A stretch of DNA of 64,000 nt from the IMG/VR virus record IMGVR_UViG_3300027899_000001, positions 248,001 through 312,000 of that record. One strand, given 5' to 3'. Under the pieces are notes generated by a model that saw nothing but the letters and a program-made list of their open reading frames with translations, had not been told where the DNA came from and did no database searches. The translations under genes and the position numbers were made by a program. Below, piece by piece: positions 10,318 to 49,608 of the stretch (its first letter is position 1; every line of letters begins with the position of its first letter).

Positions 10318-10321
10318 AATA

Positions 10322-10984: not shown

Positions 10985-11010
10985 ATTCTTTTTTATTTTA
11001 TATTAGTAAT

Positions 11011-11676: not shown

Positions 11677-11682
11677 TAGCTA

Positions 11683-12384: not shown

Positions 12385-12393
12385 AGTTTTTAT

Positions 12394-13010: not shown

Positions 13011-13013
13011 ATT

Positions 13014-29337: not shown

Positions 29338-29561
29338 ATGCACAAGAATATATCGATTATCTTAAAGATTTTGCTGAAAAAATAGATGATGAAACTCTTA
29401 AATCAGTAGGAATTAAATCTATTGCAATTATACAAGAAGTTCTTGCAAAAGATCCAATGAAACCAAAATTATTGGTAAAAAAATTAGATGAAACACAATA
29501 TAGTGTATATGGTAGAGATGAAATTTTAACAGAATTGAACAGAATATTTAGAGACGTATGA
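29334..29561 (+). CDS. Hypothetical protein
   Basis: 75 aa ORF. Confidence 0.55.
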   Translation: MNAQEYIDYLKDFAEKIDDETLKSVGIKSIAIIQEVLAKDPMKPKLLVKKLDETQYSVYGRDEILTELNRIFRDV

Positions 29562-30803: not shown

Positions 30804-31730
30804 ATGGCACGACCTAAAAAAGTAAAAGTAGAAGAACCTGCTAAAATAGCAGTAGAAGAAAAAGAAACTCTAAATGATATTATAATTGAAAAAAGTAACA
30901 TTTATCCATTAGGAGAAATACAGATTGTAGATAATCCGGTGTTTGAAGTTCCATATTTGGAATTTAATTATAATAAAGAGTCTGACACCATTTCTCTAGA
31001 AAAACAAAAACAAACAATACAAGTTAGCACTTCTAGAGTAGGCACGCATATAACTTCAGAACAAGCTAAAGAATTTAAAGATAAATTTAATTTAGACTTA
31101 AACGAAGTTGTTAAAAAAGCATTGATAAATGAAGCTTCTCAACAATTAACAAAACATTATATATCAAAAATTGGAGAAGCTGCTACAGAAAATTATATTA
31201 AAGAATATACCCGTTGGGATAAGTTTAAAGTATGGGCATATAAACTTGTTAAAAAACAATATAGAAAAAAAATAAAAATTCAAACTTCTAAAGAGTTAAA
31301 TTATAGAATTTTAAAAGAAGCCAATAATATTGCAGCAAATAGTAGATGGGGAAGTGGAAATTTTGTTATATGTAGTTTAAAAACTGCTATGCTTTTACAG
31401 AGTTCATCTAATTTTGTATATGCTACTTTAAATAAACCTGTATCTACAAATGGCAGTATTTATCCAATTGGAACTATTGCAGGCGTGACTATTTATGTAG
31501 ATCCTTATATGTTATATCAAGATACTAATGTATACATAGGAAGAAGAAATAATACAAATCAGCCTGGCATAAAACTATTTTTTAAAGAATCTTATAGTTA
31601 TATGCAAACGGAAGGTCTTGGTGCTCCAAAGGTTATATTAGAAATGAGATACGCAATCGCAGGCGTTGGTAAAAATTATAAAGACCAATATAGAAAATTT
31701 GAATACATTGATAAAATCATAAACAAATGA
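30804..31730 (+). CDS. Truncated paralog of the major capsid protein
   Basis: 'NGSIYPIGTIAGVTIYVDPYMLYQDTNVYIGR...TEGLGAPKVILEMRYA' aligns with 'NGSLYPLGTIAGMTLYVDPNMLYSDTRVLVGR...TEGTGAPKVIIKTRYA' in 56803-58575. Confidence 0.8.
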   Translation: MARPKKVKVEEPAKIAVEEKETLNDIIIEKSNIYPLGEIQIVDNPVFEVPYLEFNYNKESDTISLEKQKQTIQVSTSRVGTHITSEQAKEFKDKFNLDLNEVVKKALINEASQQLTKHYISKIGEAATENYIKEYTRWDKFKVWAYKLVKKQYRKKIKIQTSKELNYRILKEANNIAANSRWGSGNFVICSLKTAMLLQSSSNFVYATLNKPVSTNGSIYPIGTIAGVTIYVDPYMLYQDTNVYIGRRNNTNQPGIKLFFKESYSYMQTEGLGAPKVILEMRYAIAGVGKNYKDQYRKFEYIDKIINK

Positions 31731-33456: not shown

Positions 33457-33657
33457 ATGACAACATTACTTAAAAGAACACTAAAACCAAACAAATGGAT
33501 TGGTGGTGTTTGTGGCGGTCTCGGCAAATTTTTTGGAGTAGATCCACTTATTTGGAGACTGATTTTTATATTTGGAAGTATGTTTACAATATTTCCGTTT
33601 ATAGTAACTTATGTAGTTATGTGGATTATAGTTCCAAAAGAAACTCCAACCGTTTAA
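33457..33657 (+). CDS. pspC: PspC-domain membrane protein
   Basis: 'KWIGGVCGGLGKFFGVDP..WRL.F....Y..MWI.VP'. Confidence 0.85.
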   Translation: MTTLLKRTLKPNKWIGGVCGGLGKFFGVDPLIWRLIFIFGSMFTIFPFIVTYVVMWIIVPKETPTV

Positions 33658-34651: not shown

Positions 34652-35383
34652 GTGGAAAAGATTAAAGTTTATACATATCACGGATTTGGCGATCAGTGTA
34701 TCTGTTATGGAATTCTTAAAGAATTTGCAAAAAGATATAATGAAGTAAAAGTGTATTCTGATGTAATGAATAAAAATACATTTAATTCAATTACTCGTTT
34801 ATATTCTAGCCTGAAAAATGTAGAATTAATAGATGAAGTCTATAAAGAAGAAATTCACGCTGCTGATCATAAAATAGCTCATACTAAATACTGGTTTGAT
34901 AAAGTTCTTCCATGGTATCAAGATCCATCATTACCTCCACCAGAATGGTTTAAAGATGATTGGTGGTTTGATAGACAATGGTATTTAAATGCTAGTTTGC
35001 CATTTAATTTAAAATGGGATAATTTTTATTTTGAAAGAGATTTAAATAAAGAAAAAGAAGTTTTTTATGATATCTTGGGCTTAAAAGATAATCAAGAATT
35101 TTTATTTTTTCATGAAGATCCTGTAAGAAATTATAATATTAATAAAAAACATCTAAATGCAAATATTAAATGGATAGATTTTTTTAATTATCAAGATATT
35201 AGCATATTAGATATTTTATATACTATTGAACATGCTAAAGAAGTGCATACTTTTAATACAAGTACATTAACATTTATTGATTTAATGAATATTCAGCACC
35301 CTGCTTTATATTATCATATGTATGTAAGACCATCAATATTTGATAGTATAAATTTAAGATTACCTTGGAATTTAATAACATAA
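34652..35383 (+). CDS. Putative GT-B glycosyltransferase, paralog 1 of 3
   Basis: 'HGFGDQ...G', 'WDNFYFERD', 'YTIEHAKEVH'. Confidence 0.55.
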   Translation: MEKIKVYTYHGFGDQCICYGILKEFAKRYNEVKVYSDVMNKNTFNSITRLYSSLKNVELIDEVYKEEIHAADHKIAHTKYWFDKVLPWYQDPSLPPPEWFKDDWWFDRQWYLNASLPFNLKWDNFYFERDLNKEKEVFYDILGLKDNQEFLFFHEDPVRNYNINKKHLNANIKWIDFFNYQDISILDILYTIEHAKEVHTFNTSTLTFIDLMNIQHPALYYHMYVRPSIFDSINLRLPWNLIT

Positions 35384-35386: not shown

Positions 35387-36124
35387 ATGAAAGTATATAC
35401 ACATACGCAATTTGGAGATCATGTTGTAACATTTGGAATTATTAAAGAATATTCAAAACAATATGATGAAGTAATATTAACTATTAGTGATAACGCACAA
35501 GGAACTTTAGTAAGTTCTTCTCATAATGATAATATTAAAAGATTATTTTCAAGTATTCCTAATGTAGTTTTAACAACTGAACGATTTGCAGATAATGAAT
35601 ATGATAAAATTATTAGTAGCGGTTGGTGGTATGAACAAGTTAAGCCATGGTTTGAAAATCAAGATTTACCATATACATTAGGAGATAATATGATAGGAGA
35701 TAGATTTTGGTATATTCTTGGTGGTGTTCCATTTTATTTAAAATGGGATAATTTTTACTTTGAAAGAGATCCCAAAAAAGAAAAAGAAGCATATTATGAT
35801 ATATTTGGATTAAAAGAAAATCAACAATATTTATTTTTACATGAAGATCCAAAAAGAAATAATGGAATATGTATAAATAGGAAGTATGTTAGTGATATGT
35901 ATAGAGTAATTGAATTAGCAAAATATCCTGAAGTAAGCGTGTTAGATATTTTATACACTATTGAAAAAGCTAAAGAAGTGCATATTATTAATACTGGATT
36001 AAGATCTTTTATAGATTTAATGAATATAAATCATAACAATTTAATTTATCATAAATACACAAGACCTAATCCAGTAGAACAAGCAGCAATGAGATTAAAT
36101 TGGAAAGTAATAGATAAATTTTAA
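35387..36124 (+). CDS. Putative GT-B glycosyltransferase, paralog 2 of 3
   Basis: 'QFGDH...G', 'WDNFYFERD', 'YTIEKAKEVH'. Confidence 0.55.
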   Translation: MKVYTHTQFGDHVVTFGIIKEYSKQYDEVILTISDNAQGTLVSSSHNDNIKRLFSSIPNVVLTTERFADNEYDKIISSGWWYEQVKPWFENQDLPYTLGDNMIGDRFWYILGGVPFYLKWDNFYFERDPKKEKEAYYDIFGLKENQQYLFLHEDPKRNNGICINRKYVSDMYRVIELAKYPEVSVLDILYTIEKAKEVHIINTGLRSFIDLMNINHNNLIYHKYTRPNPVEQAAMRLNWKVIDKF

Positions 36125-36768: not shown

Positions 36769-37385
36769 ATTATTATAGCCAAACAGGAGAAGATAAAATA
36801 ATAGAAGAATATTTTGAAAAAAATTATATTGGTGGTTGTATAGAAGTTGGCGCAATGGATGGCGTAGGTAATAGCAATACTAATTATTTTGAAAAAAGTG
36901 GATGGTATAGTTTATGTGTTGAACCAAATCCTCATTATTTTAAACAATTAATTAATAATAGATTACATAGCATTAATTACGCTATATCAAATGTTAATGA
37001 TGATTTAATTTTTAATATAGTAGATATTAAAGACTCGTATATTCATCAAGATGCTATAAGTTCTTTAAAAATAGATGATAGACTATTTAATCAACACAAA
37101 GATTTAGGATATAATATGTCAATAATACCTATAATCGTTAAGGCTATAACATTAGACTATTGTATTGAACATTTTTATAAATATGATACACTAGATTTTA
37201 TAAGTATTGATACAGAAGGAACAGAATTAGATGTACTAAAAGGATTTTCTATTGAAAAATGGATTCCTAAATTATTAATAATTGAAAATAATTATAATGA
37301 CCCAGATATAGAAATTTATTTAGATATGTTTGGATATAAAAAAGATAGAAGATTAGCAGTAAATGATTTTTATATTAAAAAATGA
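36765..37385 (+). CDS. FkbM-family methyltransferase
   Basis: 'YYSQ.GED', 'IEVGA.DG...SNT', 'VEPNP', 'IDTEG.E..VL.G'. Confidence 0.85.
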   Translation: MNYYSQTGEDKIIEEYFEKNYIGGCIEVGAMDGVGNSNTNYFEKSGWYSLCVEPNPHYFKQLINNRLHSINYAISNVNDDLIFNIVDIKDSYIHQDAISSLKIDDRLFNQHKDLGYNMSIIPIIVKAITLDYCIEHFYKYDTLDFISIDTEGTELDVLKGFSIEKWIPKLLIIENNYNDPDIEIYLDMFGYKKDRRLAVNDFYIKK

Positions 37386-37828
37386 AATTTATTCAATTAT
37401 CTAACATAGAATTTTTAAAATCTTCTATAGAAAAATTTTTTATAGATAATAAATACGCGTATGCATTTTTTAGTCCGCATGAATATTCTTATGATGCATT
37501 ATTAAAAGAAATAGCTTCTAAACCAAAAGATTATTTTGTATTTTTAATGGATGATAATAATATTGCTGGATATGGTTTACTTAGAGGATGGAGCGAAGGA
37601 TATGATATTCCAAGCTTAGGAATAATGATAGATATTAATTATCAAGGAAAAAAATTATCAGAAACATTGATGAATCACCTACATCAAATTTGTGTTGATA
37701 GAAATGCTAAAAAAATAAGACTAAGAGTTTATAGAAAAAACTATAAAGCAATTTCTCTTTATAATAAATTAGGATATGTATTATCTGATTTTGATGAAAA
37801 TACATTTATAGGATTTAAAACATTATAA
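37382..37828 (+). CDS. GNAT N-acetyltransferase
   Basis: 'YQGKKLSETLM', 'N.KAI.LY.KLG'. Confidence 0.85.
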   Translation: MKFIQLSNIEFLKSSIEKFFIDNKYAYAFFSPHEYSYDALLKEIASKPKDYFVFLMDDNNIAGYGLLRGWSEGYDIPSLGIMIDINYQGKKLSETLMNHLHQICVDRNAKKIRLRVYRKNYKAISLYNKLGYVLSDFDENTFIGFKTL

Positions 37829-38133: not shown

Positions 38134-39240
38134 ATGATACCATCATACAGACCTTATTTACCAAAGAGAGTTCTAAAATATGCGCATGAAGCTCTTGATT
38201 CAACATGGATTTCATGTTACGGAAAATACATACAAATGGTTGAAGAAAAATTAAGTGAAATTTCTCAATGTAAATATGTATTAACAACCGATCATGGCAC
38301 TTCTGCAGTACATTTGGTTGCAAAGGCTCTTGAGTTTAAATATCCTGAAATTAAAAAACTTATTGTTCCTTCAAATGTTTTTGTAGCAGCTTGGAATATG
38401 TTTATCACTAATCCTATTTATGAATTAATTCCAGTAGAAGCAGATATTAATACGTGGAATATTAATTATGAGTATTTAATAAAAGCTCATAAGGAACATC
38501 CAGATGCTGCATTTTTAGCAGTTCATAATATGGGCAATATCATAAATATTCCCTATATAAAATTTCATTGTCCTAATATGATTATTGTTGAAGATAATTG
38601 TGAAGGGTTTTTAGGTAGTTATGGAAACTATAAAGCGGGTTCACAGGCATTAGCATCTGCTATATCTTTTTTTGGAGGTAAAACTATTACAACAGGAGAA
38701 GGCGGCGCATTTTGCACAAATGATGAAGAAATTGCTAATGAAATTAAAAGAGTAAAATCACAAGGAGTTACATCAAGAAATTTTGTTTTTTCTGGCTTAG
38801 GATATAATTATAGAATGACTAACGTTGAAGCTGGTCTTTTATATGGTCAACTTGAAATATTAGATGAAATACTTGAATTAAAAAATAATGTTTTTAATTT
38901 ATATAAAGAAGAATTGGAAAATGTGGAAGAAATTGAATTTCAAGAATCATCAGAAGTTTGTAAACATTCTCATTGGATGTTTGGAATAAGAATGAAAACT
39001 TTCAATAAAGAAAAAACAGATGCACTAAAATATTTTCTTTATACAGGTAATGTAGAAACAAGACCTATGTTTCCTCCAATGAATTATCATAGTCATTTTA
39101 GTCATTTTCCTGATTTTTCAGTTTCAAAACAATTATTTGAAACTGCCTTTATTCTTCCATCCTTTCCTGATTTAACTAAAAAAGAAATAAAATACATATG
39201 TAAAACGCTTAAAGATTATTTACATAAAAATGGGAATTAA
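38134..39240 (+). CDS. DegT/DnrJ/EryC1/StrS PLP-dependent sugar aminotransferase (perosamine-synthase-like)
   Basis: 'GTSAVHL', 'VEDNCE', 'SFFGGKTITTGEGG', 'GYNYRMTN'. Confidence 0.9.
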   Translation: MIPSYRPYLPKRVLKYAHEALDSTWISCYGKYIQMVEEKLSEISQCKYVLTTDHGTSAVHLVAKALEFKYPEIKKLIVPSNVFVAAWNMFITNPIYELIPVEADINTWNINYEYLIKAHKEHPDAAFLAVHNMGNIINIPYIKFHCPNMIIVEDNCEGFLGSYGNYKAGSQALASAISFFGGKTITTGEGGAFCTNDEEIANEIKRVKSQGVTSRNFVFSGLGYNYRMTNVEAGLLYGQLEILDEILELKNNVFNLYKEELENVEEIEFQESSEVCKHSHWMFGIRMKTFNKEKTDALKYFLYTGNVETRPMFPPMNYHSHFSHFPDFSVSKQLFETAFILPSFPDLTKKEIKYICKTLKDYLHKNGN

Positions 39241-39924
39241 ATGAAAATTTTAATACTTGGTGATGGTAAATTAGCAACAGAACTAATTAAACAAACGGGA
39301 TGGGATTATATTAGTCGTAAAAAAGATGATATAGATTTTACTTATCCATTTACATATTTAGAAAAACTTAGATCATATGATGTTGTTATAAATTGTATAG
39401 GATATACAAAAACATATGAAAATGAAAGAAAAAAGAACTGGAATATTAATTATGTTGGTGTTATTCATTTAATGAATTATTGTAATAGTTTTCATAAAAA
39501 ATTGGTTCAAATTAGTACTGATTATGTTTATGCTAATTCAAATAATTCTCATTCTGAAGATGATATTCCAGTTCATTTTGAAAGTTGGTATACATATACA
39601 AAACTTTTAGCTGATGGATATATTCAAGCAGTAGGAAAGAATTATTTATTATTAAGAACTACATTTAAACCTCGCCCATTTCCATGGAAAAAAGCATGGG
39701 ATGATATAAAAACGAATTCTGATTATGTTGATGTTATTGCAAATTTAATAATAGAATTGATAAAAAAAGAAGCTACTGGAGTTTATAATGTAGGAACTAA
39801 TCCAAAAACATATTTTAAATTAGCTATTAAAACTAATCCCGGCTGTCAACTTGATAATAGTAATGAATTTAATCATCCTAAAAATGTTACTATGAATTTA
39901 GATAAATTACATAACATACTATGA
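39241..39924 (+). CDS. RmlD-like NDP-4-keto-sugar reductase (SDR)
   Basis: 'LILGDGKL', 'VINCIGYT', 'QISTDYV', 'YTYTK', 'LLLRT'. Confidence 0.8.
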   Translation: MKILILGDGKLATELIKQTGWDYISRKKDDIDFTYPFTYLEKLRSYDVVINCIGYTKTYENERKKNWNINYVGVIHLMNYCNSFHKKLVQISTDYVYANSNNSHSEDDIPVHFESWYTYTKLLADGYIQAVGKNYLLLRTTFKPRPFPWKKAWDDIKTNSDYVDVIANLIIELIKKEATGVYNVGTNPKTYFKLAIKTNPGCQLDNSNEFNHPKNVTMNLDKLHNIL

Positions 39925-41234
39925 TAACTACTCCATTTTATGAATTTAAAAATTCTTTAACAACAGAAAATAAATTTCAAAGTCTAATTTCTTTTATGAA
40001 TTCTTATCAATATATAAGAGAGAACAATTATTTTAAGGTTCATGAAATTGATTTAAAAGAAATAAAAAAATGGAATATAAATAATAAAGAAATAGTTCAT
40101 GAATCTGGAAAATTTTTCAAAATTGAGGGAATAAAAGTTCATACAAATTATGGAAATAAACATGATTGGGATCAGCCTATTATCAATCAACATGAAATAG
40201 GAATATTGGGTATAATTACTAAAGTACGTAATGGCGTGCGTTATTTTTTAATGCAACTTAAAATGGAACCAGGCAATATAAATCTTTTACAATTATCTCC
40301 AACTGTGCAGGCAACAAAAAGTAATTTTTTACAAGTTCATAAGGGAAAATCTACATTATATTTAGAGTATTTTGCCGAAAATAAAAAATCAAAAATATTA
40401 ATTGACCAATTACAATCAGAACAAGGTGGAAGATTTCTTAGAAAAAGAAATCGTAATATGATTGTAGAAATATATGATGAATTTGTAATTCCAGAAAATT
40501 TCTTTTGGTTAACATTAGGAGAAATAAAAAACCTTTTGCATTTAGAAAATTTTGTAAACATGGATGCAAGATCTGTGTTGTCTACTATTCCTCTTGATTA
40601 TGATTTTGGCATGCCATTATATGCTGATCAAGAAGTAATACGTTGGTTTATTGATCAAAAAATGAAATATGAATTACAAATAGAAAAGGTATCATTATCA
40701 CAATTAAAAGATTGGCATATAGCTAAAAATAGAATTTATAATTTTTATAGAGCTGATAAGTTTTTTACAGTAATAGGAATAAAAGTTGAAACAAAAAACA
40801 GAGAAATATTTTCTTGGTGCCAGCCTATGTTTAAAGATGAAAACGAAGGATTAATAGGACTTATAATGAAAAAATTTAAAGGCGATAATCATTATTTATT
40901 TCAAGTAAAAGTATTACCAGGTAATATAGATATTATTGATTTATCGCCAACTGTATCATATTCAAATTATAAACAATATATAGGATATGAAGATCAACTT
41001 GAATTTTTTGATAGATTCATATATCCAAAAAATTCACAAATTTTATATGATGTAAAACAGTCAGAAGAAGGGGGAAGATTTTATCATTTACAAACTAGAA
41101 ATATGCTAATTGAGATAGATGATGAAATAGATATTCCTGATAATTATATTTGGCTTAATAAAGATCAAATAAACAAATTTTTACCTTACGGAATGTTTAA
41201 TGTAGAATCAAGAAGTTTAATTTCAATAATATAA
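39921..41234 (+). CDS. NDP-hexose 2,3-dehydratase (EvaA/TylX3/OleV family)
   Basis: Duplicated domain: 'WDQPII.Q.E.GILG...EPGN...QLSPTVQAT.SN...QSEQGGRF..K.NRN' and 'QSEEGGRFY...RN'. Confidence 0.9.
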   Translation: MITTPFYEFKNSLTTENKFQSLISFMNSYQYIRENNYFKVHEIDLKEIKKWNINNKEIVHESGKFFKIEGIKVHTNYGNKHDWDQPIINQHEIGILGIITKVRNGVRYFLMQLKMEPGNINLLQLSPTVQATKSNFLQVHKGKSTLYLEYFAENKKSKILIDQLQSEQGGRFLRKRNRNMIVEIYDEFVIPENFFWLTLGEIKNLLHLENFVNMDARSVLSTIPLDYDFGMPLYADQEVIRWFIDQKMKYELQIEKVSLSQLKDWHIAKNRIYNFYRADKFFTVIGIKVETKNREIFSWCQPMFKDENEGLIGLIMKKFKGDNHYLFQVKVLPGNIDIIDLSPTVSYSNYKQYIGYEDQLEFFDRFIYPKNSQILYDVKQSEEGGRFYHLQTRNMLIEIDDEIDIPDNYIWLNKDQINKFLPYGMFNVESRSLISII

Positions 41235-41246
41235 ATAATATAAATT

Positions 41247-42185
41247 ATGAATGTAGCATTAATTGGAACAGGATATTGGGGTAAAAAATATGTACATACT
41301 TTAATGAGTATAGAAGATATAAATTTATCCTGGGTATGTGCAAAAACTGATACAGAAAAATTTGCACCAACAAATACAAAATTCACTAACAACTATAAAG
41401 ATATTCTGCATGATAAAGATGTAGAATGCATTATAATTGCAACACCACTTGAAACACACTATGAAATAGCAAAAGACTGCCTAATAGCAAGAAAGCATGT
41501 ATTATTAGAAAAACCATTTACAAGAACTTCTGAAGAAGCTTCAAAATTATTTCATATAGCAATAGAAGAAGAACTTATATTAATGCCCGGACATATTTAT
41601 TTACATCATGACGGTATAGTACAATTAAAAAAATTAATAGATAACAAAAAAATAGGTAAAGTTGAATCTTTTTTTTCAAAAAGATTAAGTACAAGTTATA
41701 AATATTTAAATGCGTTATGGGAAGCTGGCGCGCACGATATATACATATTAGATTATTTTTTTGGTGATAAGTATAGTTATGAAATGAAAAATATAATGGG
41801 GGATATTACTCATTGCGTATTTAATTTAGAATATAATAATAAAAATAAATTAAATTCACCATATATTTATAATGATCCTAATTTACATATAATAAATGTG
41901 TATATTGAAGTTTGTAATAAATATCCAAATAAAGTAAGAGAAATAATTATAAATGGGTCTAAAAAACAAGCAATATTTGATGACAAGTCAATAGTTTTAA
42001 TAGATAATATAACTAGAGAAATCGATATTGTACAGTATAATAATACTATATCACCATTAGAAAAACAATGTAGACATTTCTTTGAGTGTATAAGAAATAA
42101 TAATATTAAACCTATATCTAACGCTTTTGATGGATTTAAGAATATACAAGTACTAGAAAGAATTAATAGTTTATTAAATCTTTAA
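41247..42185 (+). CDS. Gfo/Idh/MocA oxidoreductase (probable NDP-sugar 3-ketoreductase)
   Basis: 'IGTGYWG', 'IATP..TH', 'KHVLLEKP'. Confidence 0.85.
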   Translation: MNVALIGTGYWGKKYVHTLMSIEDINLSWVCAKTDTEKFAPTNTKFTNNYKDILHDKDVECIIIATPLETHYEIAKDCLIARKHVLLEKPFTRTSEEASKLFHIAIEEELILMPGHIYLHHDGIVQLKKLIDNKKIGKVESFFSKRLSTSYKYLNALWEAGAHDIYILDYFFGDKYSYEMKNIMGDITHCVFNLEYNNKNKLNSPYIYNDPNLHIINVYIEVCNKYPNKVREIIINGSKKQAIFDDKSIVLIDNITREIDIVQYNNTISPLEKQCRHFFECIRNNNIKPISNAFDGFKNIQVLERINSLLNL

Positions 42186-42197
42186 ATATAAAATAAT

Positions 42198-43064
42198 ATG
42201 GACAAATTAAAAGTAGCCTTTTTAGATTTTTGGCCAGAAATAACAGATGAAAATATATTTTTACCGATTCTTCAAAATCATTTTGATGTAGAAATAACAA
42301 AAAATAATCCTGATGTAATTATACATTCTATATTTGGTGGTATGCGAGAAACTCCTAATTATAAGTGTAAAAAAATTCTTTATCTTGGTGAAAATTATAG
42401 ACCAACAAATTTTAAATCTGATTATTCTATATCTTTTGATCCTCAAACTGAAACAAATTATAGATTACCTTTATGGCAATTATATATGATTCTAAGTCCT
42501 GTTCAAAAAGAAGCATTATTTGGACCAAGAATTAACTATGAACATTTTGATAGAGGTGGTTCTTTTGTTGTATCAAATCCTGGTAATTTCTTTAGAAACG
42601 GATTTTATGATAGTTTTAGTTTTGTATCTTGGCTGCAATGGTTTTCATATGGAAGATATAAGACAAATAGTTATGATTTAATAAAAGCTTCACAAGGAAA
42701 ATATTGGAGACAAGCAAAATATGAATTTTTTCAACAATATAAACATAAATATGCTATAGTATTTGAAAATAATTCATATCCTTATTATTGTACTGAAAAG
42801 CTAATGGATGCATTTCTAGCAGGCAGTTTACCTTTATATTGGGGCGATCCTAAAGTAAACGAAGACTGGAATAAAGAAGCATTTATAAATGTAGGAAAAC
42901 TTGGACAACAAGCAGCGCATGAATTAGTTCATTCTATGGAAAGAGATCCTATTTTATTTCGAGATATGTATTCAAAGCCAGTATTTACAGATGAACAGCG
43001 TCAAAAACATTTAAATAATATTGATGGTTTTAAAGATTGGCTAATAAATATAATAAAAAAATAA
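42198..43064 (+). CDS. Glycosyltransferase family 10 (alpha-1,3-fucosyltransferase-like)
   Basis: 'FEN...YY.TEKL.DAF.AG..P.YWG'. Confidence 0.85.
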   Translation: MDKLKVAFLDFWPEITDENIFLPILQNHFDVEITKNNPDVIIHSIFGGMRETPNYKCKKILYLGENYRPTNFKSDYSISFDPQTETNYRLPLWQLYMILSPVQKEALFGPRINYEHFDRGGSFVVSNPGNFFRNGFYDSFSFVSWLQWFSYGRYKTNSYDLIKASQGKYWRQAKYEFFQQYKHKYAIVFENNSYPYYCTEKLMDAFLAGSLPLYWGDPKVNEDWNKEAFINVGKLGQQAAHELVHSMERDPILFRDMYSKPVFTDEQRQKHLNNIDGFKDWLINIIKK

Positions 43065-43837
43065 TATTAATGAAAAAATTAGAAATTACAACAATCGTTG
43101 GATGCAGCAATATGTGTTCGTATTGTCCGCAAGAGTTACTCATAAAAGCATATACAGACAAAAAGAAAAAAATGAGTTTTGAAGATTTTAAAAAGATAAT
43201 GGCCAATGTTCCCAAAAATGTTGGCATTGATTTTTCAGGTTTTTCAGAAGCATTTTTAAATAAAGAATCATCTTTGATGATGAAATATTCTATTGAAAAT
43301 GGATATAACACTGTTTTATATACTACTCTTACAGGTTTTACAGAAAATGATGTTGAAGTTTTAAAAGGACTATATTTTGATAGTGTAGTTTTTCATCAAT
43401 ACGATGGTAAATCATTTAATTCAGAAAAATTTAATGTAAAAAGAACATTATTTGAAAGTTCAATACGATCTAAACAAAAATTTGGATTAGCATTTATTGA
43501 ATCTCCAGATAAATCTAAAAAAGGACTTACTCTTTGGTCAAGAGGCGGCAATCTATTTGAAATGACACCAGTAAAAGGACCTGTATTTTGTTCATCTGCG
43601 CCTGAAGATTTTAATCATAATTTAGTTATGCCTAATGGCGATGTTTATATATGTTGTATGGATTATGGATTAAAACATAAATTAGGAAATTTAAACGAAA
43701 CTAATTACAATAACTTAGATAGAACTATTATAACACAGCTCTCTAATAAGAGTATGTCTGATTTGTTATGTAGAACATGTGAACTTTGTAAACAAAGATA
43801 TGAAATATTAATAGGGGGAATGCCTCATAAATTTTAA
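43037..43837 (+). CDS. Radical SAM / SPASM-type protein
   Basis: 'GCSNMCSYC'; C-terminal 'NGDV..CC.D...LGN...C..C'. Confidence 0.8.
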   Translation: MANKYNKKIILMKKLEITTIVGCSNMCSYCPQELLIKAYTDKKKKMSFEDFKKIMANVPKNVGIDFSGFSEAFLNKESSLMMKYSIENGYNTVLYTTLTGFTENDVEVLKGLYFDSVVFHQYDGKSFNSEKFNVKRTLFESSIRSKQKFGLAFIESPDKSKKGLTLWSRGGNLFEMTPVKGPVFCSSAPEDFNHNLVMPNGDVYICCMDYGLKHKLGNLNETNYNNLDRTIITQLSNKSMSDLLCRTCELCKQRYEILIGGMPHKF

Positions 43838-43840
43838 ATT

Positions 43841-44512
43841 ATGAATATAGTTGTAATCAGTCTCGAAAGAGCTGTAAATAGAAGAGAACGTATAAAAGCT
43901 CAATTAGAAGAAAGAAAGATTGATGCAATAATAATGGATGCTGTTGATGGAAAAAACCTTTCTGAACAAGAACTTAATAAAAGAATATCTTTACAGGGAG
44001 GGTATCGTTTTGGTGAAAAATTTAAGCCAGGAGAAATAGCATGTACTATGTCTCATATAAATGCACTTAAAATTGCACAAGAAAAAGATTGGCCATATTT
44101 AATTGTATTAGAAGATGATATAATCATGGCTGATGATTTTGAAAAAAGAATAAATTTTTTAATTAGAATTCTTCCTGCATTTTGGGAACACGTATATCTT
44201 TCAGGAATTCCACGTTTAGGATTTGCGCCTAAACCTTTATTAGATCTACCTAATATTGTTCTTTCTATTTTTACAGAGTGCACACATTCAATGATGATAA
44301 AAAATACAGCATATCAAAAATTAATTGATCATTTATCGCAATTTGAAACTACAACAGATGATATGTATAATAGCATTATAAGTAATAAGAAACTTGCATC
44401 TTTTACATATTATCCCTTTGTTACTTACCCATCAGATGATTATACATATATATGGGATCTTAAATTAGAAAGAGAACATAAAGCAAAACAATACTTCAGA
44501 AACACTATATAA
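43841..44512 (+). CDS. Glycosyltransferase, GT25-like
   Basis: 'ISLER..RR', 'AVDG', 'GEIAC..SH', 'LEDD'. Confidence 0.85.
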   Translation: MNIVVISLERAVNRRERIKAQLEERKIDAIIMDAVDGKNLSEQELNKRISLQGGYRFGEKFKPGEIACTMSHINALKIAQEKDWPYLIVLEDDIIMADDFEKRINFLIRILPAFWEHVYLSGIPRLGFAPKPLLDLPNIVLSIFTECTHSMMIKNTAYQKLIDHLSQFETTTDDMYNSIISNKKLASFTYYPFVTYPSDDYTYIWDLKLEREHKAKQYFRNTI

Positions 44513-44517
44513 AATAT

Positions 44518-45234
44518 ATGGAAAATTCAATATACATTTACCATCATCTTGGGTTAGGCGATCATTTTCTTTGCAATGGAATAGTAAGAACCTATGCAGA
44601 AAGATACGATAAAGTATTTTTATTTGCAAAACCACGAAATAATACTAATGTTGTACGTTTGTATAAAGATCTAACAAAATTAAAAGTGCTACCATTAGAT
44701 GATCCAGATGTAAGATTTTTTATGCAAATAAATCCTAATAATAATTATAAAATTATAGGAATAACTCCAGAATGGTTTAGAAAATTAGATGTAGAAAAGG
44801 CATTCTTATCATTTGATCACGGATTCTATGTAGCAGCTGATGTTCCATTTGAAGATAAATGGAATAAATTTTACTTTGAAAGAGATATTGAATCTGAGAA
44901 AAATGCATATTATAATAGACTTAATTTAAAAGATGAAGAAGAATATTTATTTGTTCATGACGATAGAGAAAGAGGAAGATATTTTAAACCTGAAACTATA
45001 GAAAAAGGAATTAAAATTATTAGAGCAACTGATTATAAAGATGTGGGAATATTTGATTTTATATACACAATAGAACATGCTAAAGAAGTTCATGTAATGA
45101 ATAGTTCTTTTTCCTGTTTAATAGATACTATGCAAATAAAAAATGATCATTTATTTTATCATCATTATGCAAGAACAGATATGGGAGAAAATCCTAATCA
45201 TCAATTTAAATTAAATTGGACAATTTTAAAATAA
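44518..45234 (+). CDS. Putative GT-B glycosyltransferase, paralog 3 of 3
   Basis: 'HLGLGDH..CNG', 'WNKFYFERD', 'YTIEHAKEVH'. Confidence 0.55.
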   Translation: MENSIYIYHHLGLGDHFLCNGIVRTYAERYDKVFLFAKPRNNTNVVRLYKDLTKLKVLPLDDPDVRFFMQINPNNNYKIIGITPEWFRKLDVEKAFLSFDHGFYVAADVPFEDKWNKFYFERDIESEKNAYYNRLNLKDEEEYLFVHDDRERGRYFKPETIEKGIKIIRATDYKDVGIFDFIYTIEHAKEVHVMNSSFSCLIDTMQIKNDHLFYHHYARTDMGENPNHQFKLNWTILK

Positions 45235-45250
45235 TTTAATAATCTATAAA

Positions 45251-45634
45251 ATGGAAATACTTGTACCTGTATCATTAGGAGAATTATATGATAAAATATC
45301 GATTTTGCTTATTAAAAAAGAAAATGTTAAAGATACAATTAAATTAGAAAATATTCAAAAAGAATTAGATATTCTTCAAGATATTGCTGAAAATTTTGAT
45401 ATTGATGGAATATATCATACAGAATTATACAATATAAACAGTCACATATGGAATATAGAAGATAAAATACGAATAAAAGAAAAAAATAAAGATTTCCATA
45501 ATGATGAATTTATTGAATTGGCTCGATCAGTTTATTTTTGGAATGATAAACGATCAGAAGTAAAAAGACAAATCAATCTTCAATATAACTCAAGTATAAT
45601 AGAAGAAAAACAATATGAAAAATACAAATTGTAG
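45251..45634 (+). CDS. Small helical protein, DUF6165-like
   Basis: 'PVSLGEL.DKI.IL.IK...L..IN..IW.IED.IR...ARSVY..ND.R...K..IN'. Confidence 0.7.
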   Translation: MEILVPVSLGELYDKISILLIKKENVKDTIKLENIQKELDILQDIAENFDIDGIYHTELYNINSHIWNIEDKIRIKEKNKDFHNDEFIELARSVYFWNDKRSEVKRQINLQYNSSIIEEKQYEKYKL

Positions 45635-46910
45635 AATAACAAATTCTCCCCTTATAGAATTATTTTCGTTAGGAGATCTTTATATATCAGATTTTATTAA
45701 AACAGAAGGAGACTATAGAGGAACAAAAAAATGGGATTTAACATTGATGTTATCTCCAGATACTCAGTGCCTTCAGTTAAAAGAAAATGCAGATAAAGAT
45801 TTTATGTATGGCAAATATTGGTATCGTTCGGGTACTAATACTACTATGAAAATGGAACTTTTTGATATTGCTAATTCTTGTATGAATTTATCTAAAATAA
45901 AGGCAAAAAATGATGTAGATGATCCTTATGATAAATTAGTATTTTTAGACATAGCATCAAATGATGGAACATTATTATCATTTGTCAATAATAAGAAATA
46001 TGAACGGATAGGAATAGATCCAGCAGAAGGAAGTTTTCAAATTGAAGCAAAAAATAATTGTGATATTGCAGTTAAAGATTTTTTCTCAAAAGATGTTTAT
46101 GAAAAATGGGAACCAATAATATCTGGAGAATTAACTAAAGCTTCTATTGTTACATGTATTGCTATGTTTTATGATCTTGAAGATCCTCTTTTATTTCTTA
46201 AAGATGTTTACGATATTATGGAAGATGATGGTTTATTTGTTATTCAACAAAGTTATATGCCATTAATGATTAAACAACTTGCATTTGATAATATTTGTCA
46301 TGAACATGTATTTTATCATTCTTTATATTCAATGGAATATATGTTAAGGCAGATTGGATTTAAAGTAGTCGATGTTATATTAAATGATGTTAATGGCGGA
46401 AGCTTTAGAACATATATTCAAAAACAAAAAGCAAAGCCAGAATCTTTTGGATCTTCACCATATAGAGATGTAGCTCAAATGCGTCTACAATCACTCAGGG
46501 AATATGAGAAGACATTAAATCTTAAAGATAAGGAATCCTATATAAACTTTTGGAATGATATTCAAGAGTTAAAAAAACAGACTTGCGAATTTGTTATGAA
46601 AGCACATGAATCAGGAAAAAGTATATGGGTTTATGGCGCATCAACTAAAGGTAATACACTTCTTCAGTGGTTTGGATTAGATAATTTGTGGATAGATGGC
46701 GCTGCAGAAAGAAGCCCTTATAAATTTGGACTAAAAACAATAGGTACAAATATACCTATTCATTCTGAAGAAACCATGAGAAATATTCATCCAGATTATT
46801 TACTCGTTTTACCTTGGCATTTTATAGATGAATTTAAAGAAAGAGAAAAATCATATTTAGAAAAGGGTGGGCATTTTATTATACCATGTCCTAAATTTGA
46901 AATAATATAA
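45615..46910 (+). CDS. NDP-hexose C-methyltransferase (EryBIII/TylCIII/NovU-like)
   Basis: N-terminal Zn-binding 'CR...LG', 'DIASNDG.LL', 'HEH..Y.S', C-terminal 'GASTKGNTLL...PDY.L.LPW'. Confidence 0.85.
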   Translation: MKNTNCRITNSPLIELFSLGDLYISDFIKTEGDYRGTKKWDLTLMLSPDTQCLQLKENADKDFMYGKYWYRSGTNTTMKMELFDIANSCMNLSKIKAKNDVDDPYDKLVFLDIASNDGTLLSFVNNKKYERIGIDPAEGSFQIEAKNNCDIAVKDFFSKDVYEKWEPIISGELTKASIVTCIAMFYDLEDPLLFLKDVYDIMEDDGLFVIQQSYMPLMIKQLAFDNICHEHVFYHSLYSMEYMLRQIGFKVVDVILNDVNGGSFRTYIQKQKAKPESFGSSPYRDVAQMRLQSLREYEKTLNLKDKESYINFWNDIQELKKQTCEFVMKAHESGKSIWVYGASTKGNTLLQWFGLDNLWIDGAAERSPYKFGLKTIGTNIPIHSEETMRNIHPDYLLVLPWHFIDEFKEREKSYLEKGGHFIIPCPKFEII

Positions 46911-46916: not shown

Positions 46917-47696
46917 ATGAAAATATATGTAGATAAAGATGTAAATATATTTGAAGGAGAAGCTGCTGAAAAATTATTAAAAGAACATAATGACAAACAA
47001 TATTTTATAAAAAATGTAGGTGTTCCTAAAGTAGATATTGAACGTTGGAATGAAGCGCAATCATATGAACGAAAAACTTGGTGTGATTCTGCAGCTAAAA
47101 ACATGGAAACTGATCATAATGAAGAGCATGAAAAACACTTTGGTGGATATGAAGAATTAAATTTTATGCTTCCTAACACATATCTTAATATAATTGAATT
47201 AGGATGTGGGCCATTTACTAATTTACGATTAATAGTTCCAAAAATATATCATCTGCCTATTAAAAATATTGATTTATTAGATCCGCTTATAAACGAATAT
47301 ATCAATCATTCTCCATCCTGTGCATATAAAAACGGTTATTTAAATATGTTAAAAGTTAATTTATATAATTGTGCTATAGAAAATTATATAACAACAAAAG
47401 AATATCAATTAGTTGTAATGATAAATGTAATAGAACATTGTTTTGATGTTGATGAAATATTTAAAAAAATATCTAATATATTATGTGATAATGGTATTTT
47501 TATTTTTCATGATAAATTTATTAAAGAAAAAAATATTGATGAATTTTATGAAAGAATTTATGATTCTGGACATCCTTTAAAATTAACGTATAAATATATT
47601 GAAGATATAATAGAAACAAATTTTAAAACTTTATATACAAAATCATATATAGATCAATATGATAATGAATGTATATATAAAATACTTAAAAAATAA
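46917..47696 (+). CDS. Class I SAM methyltransferase
   Basis: 'IELGCGP', 'NVIEH'. Confidence 0.75.
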   Translation: MKIYVDKDVNIFEGEAAEKLLKEHNDKQYFIKNVGVPKVDIERWNEAQSYERKTWCDSAAKNMETDHNEEHEKHFGGYEELNFMLPNTYLNIIELGCGPFTNLRLIVPKIYHLPIKNIDLLDPLINEYINHSPSCAYKNGYLNMLKVNLYNCAIENYITTKEYQLVVMINVIEHCFDVDEIFKKISNILCDNGIFIFHDKFIKEKNIDEFYERIYDSGHPLKLTYKYIEDIIETNFKTLYTKSYIDQYDNECIYKILKK

Positions 47697-47701
47697 TTTT
47701 A

Positions 47702-47749
47702 ATGAATAAAAAAATAGCGCTTATCACCGGGATAACTGGCCCACATTAA
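47702..47749 (+). pseudogene. Stranded 5' remnant of gmd (MNKKIALITGITGPH*)
   Basis: Hand-translated; aligns with NKKIALVTGING at the start of the intact gmd. Confidence 0.8.
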
Positions 47750-47804
47750 ATATCAATTATGTCAGTAATTAAAATAATATATACAATAAACGATTTTATA
47801 TATT

Positions 47805-48566
47805 ATGGGAAGAAAAAAACAAGAAATTATATTTGAAAAAAGACTCTGCGAAGAATGCAGTAATGAATTTATAATAAATAAAAAATCAAAAAAGAGGTTT
47901 TGTTGTTCTATTTGTGCAAAAAGAAATAATGGAAAAAGAAATAAAGGAAAAAAACATTTTGATGAAATAAACAAAAAGAAAGGATTAATTGGAGAAAAAA
48001 ATCCAATGTTTGGAAGATCATATTATGATATTTGGATAAATAAATTTGGAAAAGAGATAGCAGACGAAAAATTAAATCAAATTAAAGAAAATAAAAAAGG
48101 TAAAAAACATACTAAAGAACATAATAAAAAAATAAGTGAATCATTACGTGGTTTAAAAAATCCTTTCTTTGGAAAAAAACATAAACCCGAGTCATTAGCA
48201 AAAATAAGTGAAAACCATAGAGATTGTAAAGATAAAAATAATCCTATGTTTGGGCAGGGCGATAAAATTAGAAGAGAAAAAAATGGTTCATGGTTTGGAG
48301 GAATAAGTAATGAGCCTTATGATACACTATTTAATGAAGAACTTAAAACTAAAGTAAGAATTAGAGATAATTATAAATGTGTTATTTGTGGAAAATCTGG
48401 GTATGTTGTGCATCATATAGATTATAATAAACATAATAGTATAGAAGAAAACTTAGTAACTTTGTGTAAAAGTGATCATATGAAAACAAATTCTCATAGA
48501 GATAGTTGGATAGAATTTTTTAAATCGATAATAAATATGTTGTATGAGTATAAAATTAAGCAATAA
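47805..48566 (+). mobile_element. Free-standing HNH endonuclease with NUMOD3-like repeats
   Basis: 'NPMFG/NPFFG' repeats; C-terminal 'RDNYKC..C...VHHIDYNK.N....NL.TLC..H'. Confidence 0.8.
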
Positions 48567-49608
48567 AAAAATTGCCCTGGTGACTGGTATCAACGGGCAA
48601 GATGGTTCCTATTTGGCTGAACTACTTTTATCAAAGGGATATATTGTGCATGGCATAATAAGAAGAGCATCTTCTTTTAATACACAACGCATTGATCATA
48701 TTTTTTCAAATTCAAATTTAACATTACATTTTGGTGATGTAACTGATGCATTAGCAATTGATGATCTTATAAAAAATCTTCAGCCTACTGAAATTTATCA
48801 TTTAGCAGCGCAATCACATGTTAAAGTTTCTTTTGATCTTCCAAGATATACAGCAGAAGTAGATGCAATTGGAACATTAAATATTCTTGAATCTATAAGA
48901 AAACATTCTCCAAAAACAAAATTATATAATGCATGTACATCAGAATTATTTGGAAAAGCCTCAGAAATTCCTCAAAAAGAAACTACAAGATTTCACCCAA
49001 GAAGTCCATATGGAGTAGCAAAATTATATTCATATTGGATTCTTGAAAATTATGTAGAATCTTATGGAATATTTGCAATTAATGGCATACTTTTTAATCA
49101 TGAAAGTGAAAGACGAGGCGAAACATTTGTTACAAGAAAAATAACAATCGGATTATCTAAATTCTCAAATAGTTATCAGGTTGTTCAAAATTATAAACAA
49201 ATTGTTCCGCCATTGTCTATGGGAAATCTTTATTCTAAAAGAGATTGGGGATATGCACCAGATTATGTTGAGGCTATGTGGATGATGCTTCAACAAGAAA
49301 ATCCAGAAACCTTTGTTATTGCAACAGGAGAAACTCACACGATAAAAGAATTTATTGATGAAGCTATTAAATATACTCCATTTAGTGGAAAAGTTAAATG
49401 GATAGGAGAAGGCGTAGATGAAAAACTTATGTATAATAATATAATACTTATAGAAATTGATCCTAAATATTATAGGCCTGCTGAAGTAGAACATCTTGTA
49501 GGAGATTATTATAAAGCAAAAACTAAACTTAAGTGGAAACCAACAACAACATTTCATGAATTAGTTAGAAAAATGATGATTTGCGATTTAGAACAATTTA
49601 GTAAATAA
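48544..49608 (+). CDS. gmd: GDP-mannose 4,6-dehydratase
   Basis: 'TGINGQDGSYLAE.LL.KGY.VHG..RR', 'LAAQSHV', 'PRSPYGVAK', 'FNHES.RRG.TFVTRKI', 'RDWG'. Confidence 0.95.
   Translation: MSIKLSNKKIALVTGINGQDGSYLAELLLSKGYIVHGIIRRASSFNTQRIDHIFSNSNLTLHFGDVTDALAIDDLIKNLQPTEIYHLAAQSHVKVSFDLPRYTAEVDAIGTLNILESIRKHSPKTKLYNACTSELFGKASEIPQKETTRFHPRSPYGVAKLYSYWILENYVESYGIFAINGILFNHESERRGETFVTRKITIGLSKFSNSYQVVQNYKQIVPPLSMGNLYSKRDWGYAPDYVEAMWMMLQQENPETFVIATGETHTIKEFIDEAIKYTPFSGKVKWIGEGVDEKLMYNNIILIEIDPKYYRPAEVEHLVGDYYKAKTKLKWKPTTTFHELVRKMMICDLEQFSK

Follow-up and report, generated by a model that had tools for sequence, protein, structure and literature searches.

A 405-kb uncultured phage related to the gut Lak megaphages carries an intact three-gene cassette that is predicted to make a 2,6-dideoxy sugar. 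The cassette lies inside a 28-kb block of sugar-building genes, and no counterpart was found among deposited phage genomes: a tblastn search of 50,697 GenBank phage records returned no match to its defining enzyme, an EvaA-type NDP-hexose 2,3-dehydratase, and no EvaA-like fold was present in BFVD. A literature search likewise revealed no paper describing a phage example. Nevertheless, the dehydratase is not confined to this clade, because a second jumbo-phage lineage in IMG/VR acquired it independently.

A first-pass annotation of the sequence had noted a 2,3-dehydratase next to a Gfo/Idh/MocA reductase, with an RmlD-like reductase, a DegT aminotransferase, and a C-methyltransferase nearby. 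That observation is confirmed, as all five enzymes are present as intact open reading frames (ORFs) with E values far beyond chance, although the DegT gene lies just outside the start of the annotated interval (39241 to 46910). The accompanying interpretation, an antibiotic-type sugar pathway in a phage, is only partly supported: the enzymes look active, the genome is a phage, and no characterized phage example was found, but it is not supported that the five enzymes form one pathway of the kind that makes olivose, mycarose, and vancosamine-type sugars in actinomycetes.

Phage origin of the sequence

The window, by which we mean the whole 64,000-nucleotide stretch analyzed, is identical to part of IMG/VR contig UViG_3300027899_000001 (405,016 bp). 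The phage setting is evidenced by a Gp23-family major capsid protein (56803 to 58575, minus strand) that is 48% identical to that of Prevotella Lak megaphages and by a prohead protease (58658 to 61003, minus strand).

The proposed dideoxy-sugar cassette

Three genes lie back to back on the plus strand at 39241 to 42185. The dehydratase (39921 to 41234) matches PF03559 in two stretches (E = 1.7e-131), corresponding to both Nudix-like halves of the enzyme, and aligns with EvaA (PDB 4j7g) over the full length at 34% identity (E = 6e-90). The catalytic glutamates of EvaA, E139 and E190, correspond to E116 (in KMEPGN) and E167 (in LQSEQG), both of which are kept and are invariant in an alignment of 27 homologs. 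Moreover, an AlphaFold model (pLDDT 87) superimposes on 4j7g with TM scores of 0.87/0.85 over 438 columns.

Upstream is a short (227-amino-acid) RmlD-like short-chain reductase (39241 to 39924), a proposed C4-ketoreductase. It matches PF04321 (E = 2e-18) and the rmlD model TIGR01214 (E = 9e-19), but it falls below the curated cutoff of the latter and so is not a true RmlD. The Thr, Tyr, and Lys catalytic residues expected of an SDR-type C4-ketoreductase are present in its STDY and YxxxK (YTYTK) motifs. An ortholog of the same short length, 67% identical, lies beside the dehydratase in L016, one of the related contigs. Downstream is a Gfo/Idh/MocA oxidoreductase (41247 to 42185; PF01408, E = 8e-21) with the EKP motif, which we propose to be the C3-ketoreductase. 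This assignment rests mainly on gene order, because the match to the sugar 3-ketoreductase KijD10 (PDB 3rbv) is weak (E = 1e-12) and is not the top hit. This form, which we call type A, has only 18 close homologs, several of which lie on the same contigs as dehydratase homologs.

Conservation in related phages

In eight related phage-like contigs, the conserved unit is the dehydratase and the reductases, often with an RmlC-like (PF00908) gene. Across nine phage-like contexts, a Gfo gene follows the dehydratase in 8, a mini-RmlD of 229 to 241 amino acids is near it in 7, and an RmlC-like gene lies immediately upstream in 6. Two unrelated Gfo types alternate in the same slot among relatives. The cassette is conserved at 56 to 71% identity in many related contigs, and in a phylogenetic tree the window and all four context-checked relatives that were included fall in one clade of 34 sequences (support, 99), sister to a Bacteroidales-containing clade. 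The closest cellular homologs (51% identity or less) are mostly from Bacteroidota, where dehydratase-Gfo(-DegT) is a common gene order; a Gfo gene follows the dehydratase in 26 of 80 cellular loci. "Antibiotic-type" is therefore a historical label rather than the origin of these genes.

The other two enzymes appear to belong to different modules, as none of the eight related contigs has a C-methyltransferase or DegT gene within 10 kb of the dehydratase. The DegT-family aminotransferase (38134 to 39240, plus strand; PF01041, E = 4e-63) has GDP-perosamine synthase as its best PDB hit (3bn1, E = 9e-42) and retains the catalytic lysine in SFFGGK. Its homologs are named perosamine synthetase by JGI, although it passes no curated model. 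In relatives it travels without the dehydratase but with a GNAT N-acetyltransferase (here at 37382 to 37828, plus strand; PF00583, E = 7e-13), in the conserved order GNAT, 100-amino-acid ORF, DegT. The GDP-mannose 4,6-dehydratase expected of a GDP-perosamine or N-acetylperosamine pathway is also encoded (48544 to 49608, plus strand), as evidenced by a TIGR01472 (gmd) score of 464 bits against a cutoff of 415 and a PF16363 match (E = 4e-128).

The C-methyltransferase (45615 to 46910, plus strand), 4.4 kb downstream of the cassette, belongs to the TylC3/TcaB9/MtmC family of NDP-sugar enzymes. It has a SAM domain and the PF08484 C-terminal domain (E = 5e-42) and matches MtmC (PDB 4rv9, E = 2e-35) as well as TcaB9 and KijD1. 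The catalytic HEH motif is kept, but only two of the four N-terminal zinc cysteines (C6 and C52) are present, each CxxC pair being halved, and the PF08421 match is only E = 0.001. The 735-kb phage LR756501 encodes this methyltransferase twice, including a 53% identical homolog, yet it has no 2,3-dehydratase. Functional coupling of the C-methyltransferase to the dehydratase is thus not supported by the relatives, although it remains possible in this phage.

A mosaic glycan island

The cassette is part of a larger island (28397 to 56270, plus strand) of 33 same-strand ORFs of at least 100 amino acids, with 93% coding density and a GC content of 26%. The island holds nine recognized glycosyltransferases (three GT25, one GT2, one GT10, two GT8, one GT47-like, and one AGT-like), three GT9-like paralogs, at least four methyltransferases besides the C-methyltransferase, and an FAD oxidoreductase. 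None of the 33 ORFs has a predicted membrane span. Between the cassette and the C-methyltransferase (42198 to 45634, plus strand) lie genes that the first-pass annotation did not mention, namely, a GT10 fucosyltransferase-like gene, a radical SAM/SPASM gene (CxxxCxxC), a GT25 gene, one of the GT9-like paralogs, and a DUF6165 gene. The order of the fucosyltransferase and radical SAM/SPASM genes is also seen in the related contig L104. The three GT9-like paralogs belong to a family seen almost only in viruses, and DUF6165 is shared with Nucleocytoviricota, whose known glycans are on virions. A Gp23 paralog lies inside the island, as does a 66-amino-acid PspC-like membrane protein that is conserved in relatives. 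An island with homologous parts exists in LR756501.

At its left edge, the island contains a homolog of the T4 alpha-glucosyltransferase (29558 to 30802, plus strand; phrog_2888, E = 4e-62; PF11440, E = 2e-11), with 25% identity over 97% of the T4-type enzyme. This gene is 71% conserved in L016, is present in the related contig L101, and marks the left edge of the island in three relatives. No GenBank phage has an alpha-glucosyltransferase homolog above 28% identity to this one, so the parts of the island are not tied to that enzyme. At its right edge, the island ends 3 nucleotides from a convergent gene for a collagen-like protein with GIT/GxQ triplets (56273 to 56710, minus strand; PF01391, E = 2e-15) and about 530 nucleotides from the capsid gene.

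Elsewhere, the window encodes a T4 gp42-type dCMP hydroxymethylase (11683 to 12384, minus strand) that matches PDB 1b49 over its full length (E = 3e-73), keeps the cytosine-specifying aspartate of the RNDYAW motif, and is 53% identical to enzymes of T-even phages. A dNMP-kinase-like gene, a C5 cytosine methyltransferase, and homing endonucleases are also present.

Proposed pathway and acceptor

We propose that the dehydratase removes the C2 hydroxyl of an NDP-4-keto-6-deoxyhexose, that the Gfo-family reductase reduces the new C3 ketone, and that the miniature RmlD-like reductase reduces C4, which would yield an NDP-2,6-dideoxyhexose. The product is probably D-configured, because the RmlC-like epimerase found in most relatives is missing here, and it is probably dTDP-linked, as the RmlC-like neighbors in relatives hint, with the 4-keto precursor supplied by the host. 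However, no RmlA, RmlB, or other nucleotidyltransferase is encoded in the 64-kb window, the only 4,6-dehydratase there is GDP specific, and no GDP-dependent 2,3-dehydratase is known to us. Together with the GDP-mannose dehydratase, the perosamine-synthase-like aminotransferase and its GNAT, the methyltransferases, and 9 to 12 soluble glycosyltransferases, the cassette would help to assemble a methylated, deoxy-sugar-rich glycan in the cytoplasm of the infected cell. The gene content, intact catalytic residues, predicted fold, conservation of the cassette, and phage origin come directly from our analysis. In contrast, catalysis itself, the substrate nucleotide, the stereochemistry, any action of the C-methyltransferase or DegT on the dideoxy intermediate, and the acceptor are inferred.

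By analogy with chloroviruses, mimiviruses, and mycobacteriophages, we rank virion surface proteins first as the acceptor, either the capsid or, more speculatively, the adjacent collagen-like protein, and we consider this account about as likely as not. It is favored by the many glycosyltransferases and methyltransferases without a membrane span, the absence of a Wzx, Wzy, or ABC exporter, the virus-associated gene families, and the position of the island beside the capsid gene. Nevertheless, the virion acceptor rests on position and analogy, no collagen-like gene was seen beside the island in the relatives that could be read, and the GT25, GT8, and GT10 families are classic lipopolysaccharide (LPS)-core enzymes that also lack membrane spans.

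DNA is a serious alternative acceptor, although we consider it less likely. In this view, the phage would replace cytosine with 5-hydroxymethylcytosine (hmC), to which the alpha-glucosyltransferase homolog and some LPS-type glycosyltransferases would attach one to a few sugars, including the dideoxy or branched ones, creating a modification that nucleases aimed at glucosyl-hmC do not recognize. The hydroxymethylase, the dNMP-kinase-like gene, and the recurrence of the alpha-glucosyltransferase homolog at the island edge are consistent with this idea, as is published work showing that phage GT8/LPS-like enzymes glycosylate 5hmC with mono- to trisaccharides, with phage-encoded sugar-activating enzymes and sometimes beside structural genes. 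Cassette shuffling between relatives also fits an arms race with restriction systems. Moreover, in a contig of the second phage lineage (L013) the dehydratase cassette lies 7 kb from a C5 DNA methyltransferase, and in contig L007 it ends with a single GT2. However, 12 glycosyltransferases and at least 5 methyltransferases far exceed any known DNA glycan, a large glycan on 13% of all bases would be hard to package, and no deoxy or O-methyl sugar on DNA is reported in the papers that we read. The hydroxymethylase is 17 kb away on the other strand, and the alpha-glucosyltransferase homolog is conserved like a backbone gene while the island varies. Also, the C5 cytosine methyltransferase would have no target if all cytosines were hmC, and LR756501 has island homologs but no close homolog of the alpha-glucosyltransferase. 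The first-pass annotation had suggested escape from host glycosidases or modification-dependent nucleases as the purpose of the sugar; this remains conjecture, of which the nuclease half gains some plausibility from the hydroxymethylase and the alpha-glucosyltransferase homolog. Should dideoxy, and possibly C-methyl or amino, sugars indeed be placed on hmC, which we regard as unlikely but not excluded, this would be the first deoxysugar DNA hypermodification, and related megaphages would swap the epimerase and the two reductase types to change sugar stereochemistry in an arms race with restriction systems that read glycosylated hmC.

More doubtful still is that the island remodels the surface glycolipid or glycoproteins of the host during a long infection, for example, to block superinfection or to stop progeny from sticking to debris, with soluble LPS-core-type transferases acting on lipid-linked acceptors at the inner face of the membrane and the host exporting the product. 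GT25, GT8, and GT10 are indeed LPS/LOS families, the PspC-like membrane protein is conserved, the nearest cellular homologs of the dehydratase and DegT are from Bacteroidota, where dehydratase-Gfo(-DegT) gene orders recur, and variability between relatives would fit competition between phages. On the other hand, no initiating phosphoglycosyl transferase, flippase, polymerase, or ligase was found, several island families are virus restricted, the island sits by the capsid gene, and no lytic phage is known to us to invest this much in host surface glycans. Finally, it is very unlikely that the region is bacterial DNA wrongly joined to a phage contig or decaying cargo without function. The evidence is from metagenomic assembly only, and the two IMG/VR contigs are identical over 21.3 kb and so may not be independent. 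Nevertheless, capsid, protease, hydroxymethylase, and homing endonuclease genes lie on both sides of the island, its GC content matches the rest of the genome, which argues against a recent insert or a chimera, its ORFs are intact and tightly packed with overlapping stops and starts, catalytic residues are kept, and the cassette is conserved in many related contigs.

True 2-deoxy and C-branched sugars are known almost only from antibiotic-type small molecules. Here, the defining enzyme is in a virus, within the largest sugar-building gene block that we could find in any phage compared, and it is conserved but reshuffled across a clade of environmental megaphages. Whichever acceptor is right, virus-encoded glycobiology would extend to a new class of sugars. 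The cassette also offers compact, soluble enzymes for making dideoxy sugar nucleotides. Moreover, our survey shows that the 2,3-dehydratase family is widespread in Bacteroidota genomes, where no 2,6-dideoxy glycan has been described to our knowledge.

Comparison with known systems

Virus-encoded virion glycosylation is exemplified by chlorovirus capsid N-glycans, the fibril glycans of Mimivirus and Megavirinae (PMC9614988, PMC10117803), and mycobacteriophage capsid and tail glycans (PMC10527164). As in those systems, this phage carries its own soluble glycosyltransferases, GDP-mannose dehydratase, putative 4-aminotransferase with an N-acetyltransferase, and methyltransferases, its content is clade specific, and DUF6165 and the GT9-like family are shared with giant viruses. 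However, no 2,3-dehydratase or C-methyl sugar appears in the giant-virus glycan review, and a virion glycan in this phage is only inferred. A looser parallel is BclA, the collagen-like exosporium protein of Bacillus anthracis, which is O-glycosylated on GxT repeats with a chain ending in the rare sugar anthrose. There, too, a collagen-like protein with Thr-containing triplets lies next to genes for rare amino and methylated deoxy sugars, but BclA belongs to a bacterial spore, and the link here is adjacency only.

Phage DNA glycosylation, including T-even alpha/beta-glucosyl-hmC and metavirome 5hmC-glycan gene clusters (bioRxiv 10.1101/2023.12.21.572611), shares with this window a dCMP hydroxymethylase, an alpha-glucosyltransferase homolog, GT8-type transferases, and phage-encoded sugar-modifying enzymes. 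Known DNA glycans have one to three common sugars, whereas this island is an order of magnitude larger and rich in methyltransferases.

The dTDP-2,6-dideoxyhexose pathways of actinomycete natural products use the same enzyme families in the same logical order, that is, an EvaA/TylX3/OleV 2,3-dehydratase, a KijD10-type 3-ketoreductase, to which the phage Gfo enzyme is only weakly similar, a 4-ketoreductase, and optionally a TylC3/TcaB9/MtmC C-methyltransferase. The phage genes differ in that they are set among glycosyltransferases rather than in a polyketide or peptide cluster, the putative 4-ketoreductase is a mini-RmlD, the Gfo slot is occupied by alternating types among relatives, and the C-methyltransferase is not linked to the dehydratase in relatives and has lost half its zinc cysteines. 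The nearest cellular relatives are instead the uncharacterized chromosomal 2,3-dehydratase-Gfo(-DegT) cassettes of Bacteroidota and other bacteria, which share the gene order and are the likely source of the phage genes, although the phage dehydratases form a distinct clade, are shorter (about 430 to 440 amino acids against about 484), and are embedded in virus-restricted gene families.

Gene content and phage setting

The region is AT rich (about 26% GC) and tightly packed with open reading frames (ORFs). A Pfam search confirmed every enzyme named in the first-pass annotation, and the observation that it recorded therefore stands: a DegT aminotransferase (38134-39240), an RmlD-like reductase of only 227 amino acids (39241-39924), an NDP-hexose 2,3-dehydratase (39921-41234; E 1.7e-131), a Gfo/Idh/MocA oxidoreductase (41247-42185), and a C-methyltransferase (45615-46910). 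Between the oxidoreductase and the C-methyltransferase lie a GT10 fucosyltransferase-like gene, a radical SAM/SPASM gene, a GT25 gene, an unknown ORF, and DUF6165.

The genome is that of a phage, as evidenced by a Gp23-family capsid protein that is 48% identical to that of Prevotella Lak megaphages, a prohead protease, and many homing endonucleases. The window is identical to a 405,016-bp IMG/VR contig (Ga0209668_10000002), and a metagenome scan with the single protein returned only this same contig. Homing-endonuclease-like genes occur at an unusually high density (9287-9934, 11011-11676, 14149-15069, 19947-20966, 23127-23816, and 47805-48566) and comprise NUMOD3, GIY-YIG, HNH, and TnsA-like/DUF7487 types. 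Other genes include a lysine-2,3-aminomutase-like radical SAM protein (20924-22099, minus strand), a SET-domain protein (23813-24517, minus strand), and a DenV-like pyrimidine-dimer glycosylase (61233-61697, plus strand). Although gut Lak phages recode TAG, there is no sign of this here. TAG is rare (6 of 88 long-ORF stops), but it ends real ORFs and never interrupts one, and so the standard code was used.

We also asked whether a shared late promoter might link the sugar genes to the structural genes. The motif ATATATAAA (often GAATATATAAA) occurs 22 times against 10.3 expected, for example, at 5340, 8244, 18264, 19770, 19931, 23008, 26918, 26949, 56740, 61049, and 62891. About half of the copies lie 15 to 45 nt upstream of start codons on the coding strand, upstream of about 11 genes, and thus the motif is a likely promoter element. 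Nevertheless, it precedes structural and nonstructural genes alike and is nearly absent inside the glycan island, and so it gives no information on timing.

Integrity of the enzymes

The dehydratase aligns end to end with EvaA (E 6e-90). The catalytic residues E139 and E190 of EvaA, as named in PMC8987622, correspond to E116 and E167, both of which are conserved and invariant across 27 homologs. Moreover, an AlphaFold model (pLDDT 87) superposes on EvaA with a TM score of 0.87. The short RmlD-like protein (mini-RmlD) keeps its STDY and YxxxK motifs. The C-methyltransferase keeps the HEH motif of MtmC/TcaB9 but has only two of the four N-terminal zinc cysteines. The DegT protein keeps its PLP lysine and is closest to GDP-perosamine synthase, and its homologs are labeled perosamine synthetase by JGI. 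The Gfo protein has the Rossmann and EKP motifs but only a weak match to the sugar 3-ketoreductase KijD10.

A mosaic glycan island

The five enzymes are a slice of an island of about 28.4 to 56.3 kb that consists of 33 same-strand ORFs, is 93% coding, and has a GC content of 26%, like the rest of the genome. It contains nine recognizable glycosyltransferases (three GT25, one GT2, one GT10, two GT8, one GT47-like, and a T4 alpha-glucosyltransferase homolog), three paralogs of a virus-restricted family with a predicted GT9-like fold, at least four methyltransferases besides the C-methyltransferase, a GNAT, a bona fide GDP-mannose 4,6-dehydratase, and an FAD oxidoreductase. None of the 33 proteins has a predicted membrane span, and no flippase, polymerase, or exporter is present. 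The only predicted membrane protein in the island is a 66-amino-acid PspC-domain ORF (33457-33657), which is conserved at the same place in relatives. The island ends 3 nt from a convergent collagen-like gene, which is followed by the capsid gene. No collagen-like genes were found beside the islands of relatives in the loci examined, and gut Lak-A2 has no island genes within 20 kb of its capsid gene.

The three paralogs (34652-35383, 35387-36124, and 44518-45234) belong to a family of about 240 amino acids that has no Pfam or PHROG match and that also occurs in three related loci (L016, in three copies; L017; and L100). In the ESM Atlas, this family is found almost only in viruses, and in Nucleocytoviricota it is often fused or linked to DUF6165 and GNAT. 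It may be a virus-specific glycosyltransferase family. The island also holds a short Gp23 paralog (30804-31730), with counterparts in L016 (1763-2761) and in the IMG/VR contig L013 (20262-21140). These proteins of 292 to 332 amino acids are 30% identical to the C-terminal part of the capsid protein and lie beside glycosylation genes in two unrelated phage lineages, yet they are much less conserved (37%) than their neighbors (66 to 71%).

A 15-codon sequence (47702-47749; MNKKIALITGITG...) copies the N terminus of GDP-mannose dehydratase and lies just upstream of a NUMOD3/HNH homing endonuclease gene (47805-48566), which overlaps the start of the intact dehydratase gene. A group I intron was considered, but an Rfam search found nothing in 47500-48800. 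The upstream sequence is a remnant rather than an exon because the gene has its own full N terminus, and the arrangement looks like a footprint of endonuclease-associated gene replacement.

Conservation of the cassette among relatives

The best homologs of the dehydratase (56 to 71% identity) are all metagenomic. We read the gene context of eight of them, all of which sit in the same kind of one-strand array of glycosyltransferase and methyltransferase genes. Some show clear synteny to the window, including the homing endonuclease, alpha-glucosyltransferase homolog, Gp23-like gene, GT25, PspC, and FkbM. Across the nine contexts, counting the window, a Gfo gene follows the dehydratase in eight, a mini-RmlD of 229 to 241 amino acids is adjacent or near in seven, and an RmlC-like epimerase, which the window lacks, is immediately upstream in six. 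The Gfo slot is filled by two unrelated types. The type in the window has only 18 close homologs, several on the same contigs as dehydratase homologs, while other relatives carry a type with the PF22725 domain that is only about 22% identical. The conserved unit is therefore the dehydratase plus two predicted reductases, exactly what would be needed to turn an NDP-4-keto-6-deoxyhexose into an NDP-2,6-dideoxyhexose. The presence or absence of the epimerase and swaps of the reductase would change the stereoisomer made.

In contrast, the DegT gene travels with the GNAT and a 100-amino-acid ORF as a separate cassette in relatives that lack the dehydratase nearby. The C-methyltransferase is absent from all eight contexts but has a 53% identical homolog, in two copies, in the 735-kb phage LR756501. 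That phage has a similar island (FkbM at 61%, GT8, GT25, and the GT9-like family) but no dehydratase. The first-pass annotation had read the enzymes as a single mycarose/vancosamine-like pathway, an interpretation that our analysis supports only in part: such a pathway is possible in this phage but is not what the comparative data support.

One related locus, L017 (NCBI GCA_004196315.1, SDBT01000175.1), has split transketolase/E1-type thiamine-enzyme genes around a radical SAM/SPASM gene next to the dehydratase cassette (6430-8867), which may represent two-carbon branched-chain sugar chemistry. This contig and L105 (GCA_004196275.1) are phage-like islands binned into metagenome-assembled genomes, and the "Nitrosopumilus sp." label on another entry, P0015, is probably also a binning artifact.

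Distribution and origin

A tblastn search of 50,697 GenBank phage records with the dehydratase gave no match, and a Foldseek search of BFVD found only single-domain Nudix hydrolases (TM of 0.24 or lower). Literature searches for a phage or viral 2,3-dehydratase likewise found nothing, the apparent "evaA" hits being DOI strings. However, a profile-guided scan of IMG/VR, which used only two peptide patterns, found 12 further loci at about 40% identity. One of these, L007, is a real jumbo myophage (254-kb contig, tail sheath, and split topoisomerase II) with a compact dehydratase-Gfo-DegT-hexapeptide acetyltransferase-GT2 cassette (9890-14767). L013 (52-kb contig; 9956-14215) is similar, with a C5 DNA methyltransferase and the short Gp23-like gene nearby. 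The cassette of this second jumbo phage lineage, dehydratase-Gfo-DegT(-hexapeptide acetyltransferase)-GT2, would predict a 4-acetamido-2,4,6-trideoxyhexose added by a single transferase.

In cellular genomes, the family is abundant, with more than 549 loci recovered from only two peptide patterns. The best matches (51% identity or less) are mostly from Bacteroidota, often with Gfo and/or DegT following. In a FastTree phylogeny, the window's clade of 34 sequences (support 99) holds all four context-checked relatives included and is sister to a Bacteroidales-containing clade, while the IMG/VR group is a separate clade (support 100) nested among Bacteroidota. We interpret this as at least two independent acquisitions by large phages from Bacteroidota-like hosts, which fits the Lak kinship.

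Nucleotide carrier and candidate acceptors

Gene content, conserved residues, and gene contexts come directly from the sequence analyses; catalysis, the nucleotide carrier, the stereoisomer produced, and the acceptor are inferred. The only 4,6-dehydratase in the window is GDP specific. However, RmlC-like cupins flank the dehydratase in relatives, of which one has a full RmlD and another has a GDP-fucose synthase homolog. Although sequence similarity is too low to support an assignment of the carrier or of C3/C4 stereochemistry, we favor dTDP with a host-supplied precursor.

The main question is what these enzymes would glycosylate. Virion proteins are favored by the position of the island beside the capsid and collagen-like genes, the Gp23 paralog inside it, the size of the toolkit, and the virus-restricted families shared with giant viruses, whose known glycans are on virions. 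Phage DNA is a serious rival. The window encodes a T4 gp42-type dCMP hydroxymethylase (11683-12384, minus strand; E 3e-73; 53% identical to T-even phages), a dNMP-kinase-like gene (13566-14180, minus strand), and a full-length homolog of T4 alpha-glucosyltransferase (29558-30802, plus strand), a combination that would imply glycosyl-hmC DNA, and published work shows that LPS-type GT8 enzymes have been recruited to glycosylate 5hmC. A C5 cytosine DNA methyltransferase (15811-17022, minus strand) is also present, which is odd if all cytosines are replaced. Moreover, 12 transferases and at least five methyltransferases (four general plus the C-methyltransferase) seem excessive for a DNA glycan. 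The alpha-glucosyltransferase homolog is conserved like a backbone gene, while the island beside it is reshuffled, and no GenBank phage, including LR756501 with its homologous island parts, has a homolog of it above 28% identity. Host-surface remodeling cannot be excluded either, because the GT25, GT8, and GT10 families are membrane-span-free LPS-core enzymes.

Comparison with known systems

Nothing comparable is deposited or described for phages or giant viruses in the sources searched. Known DNA glycans consist of one to three common sugars. The known glycans of giant viruses are on virions. The enzymology itself is already known; what is new is its setting, a conserved but shuffled dideoxy-sugar cassette in a megaphage glycan island, next to a T-even-like hmC system.
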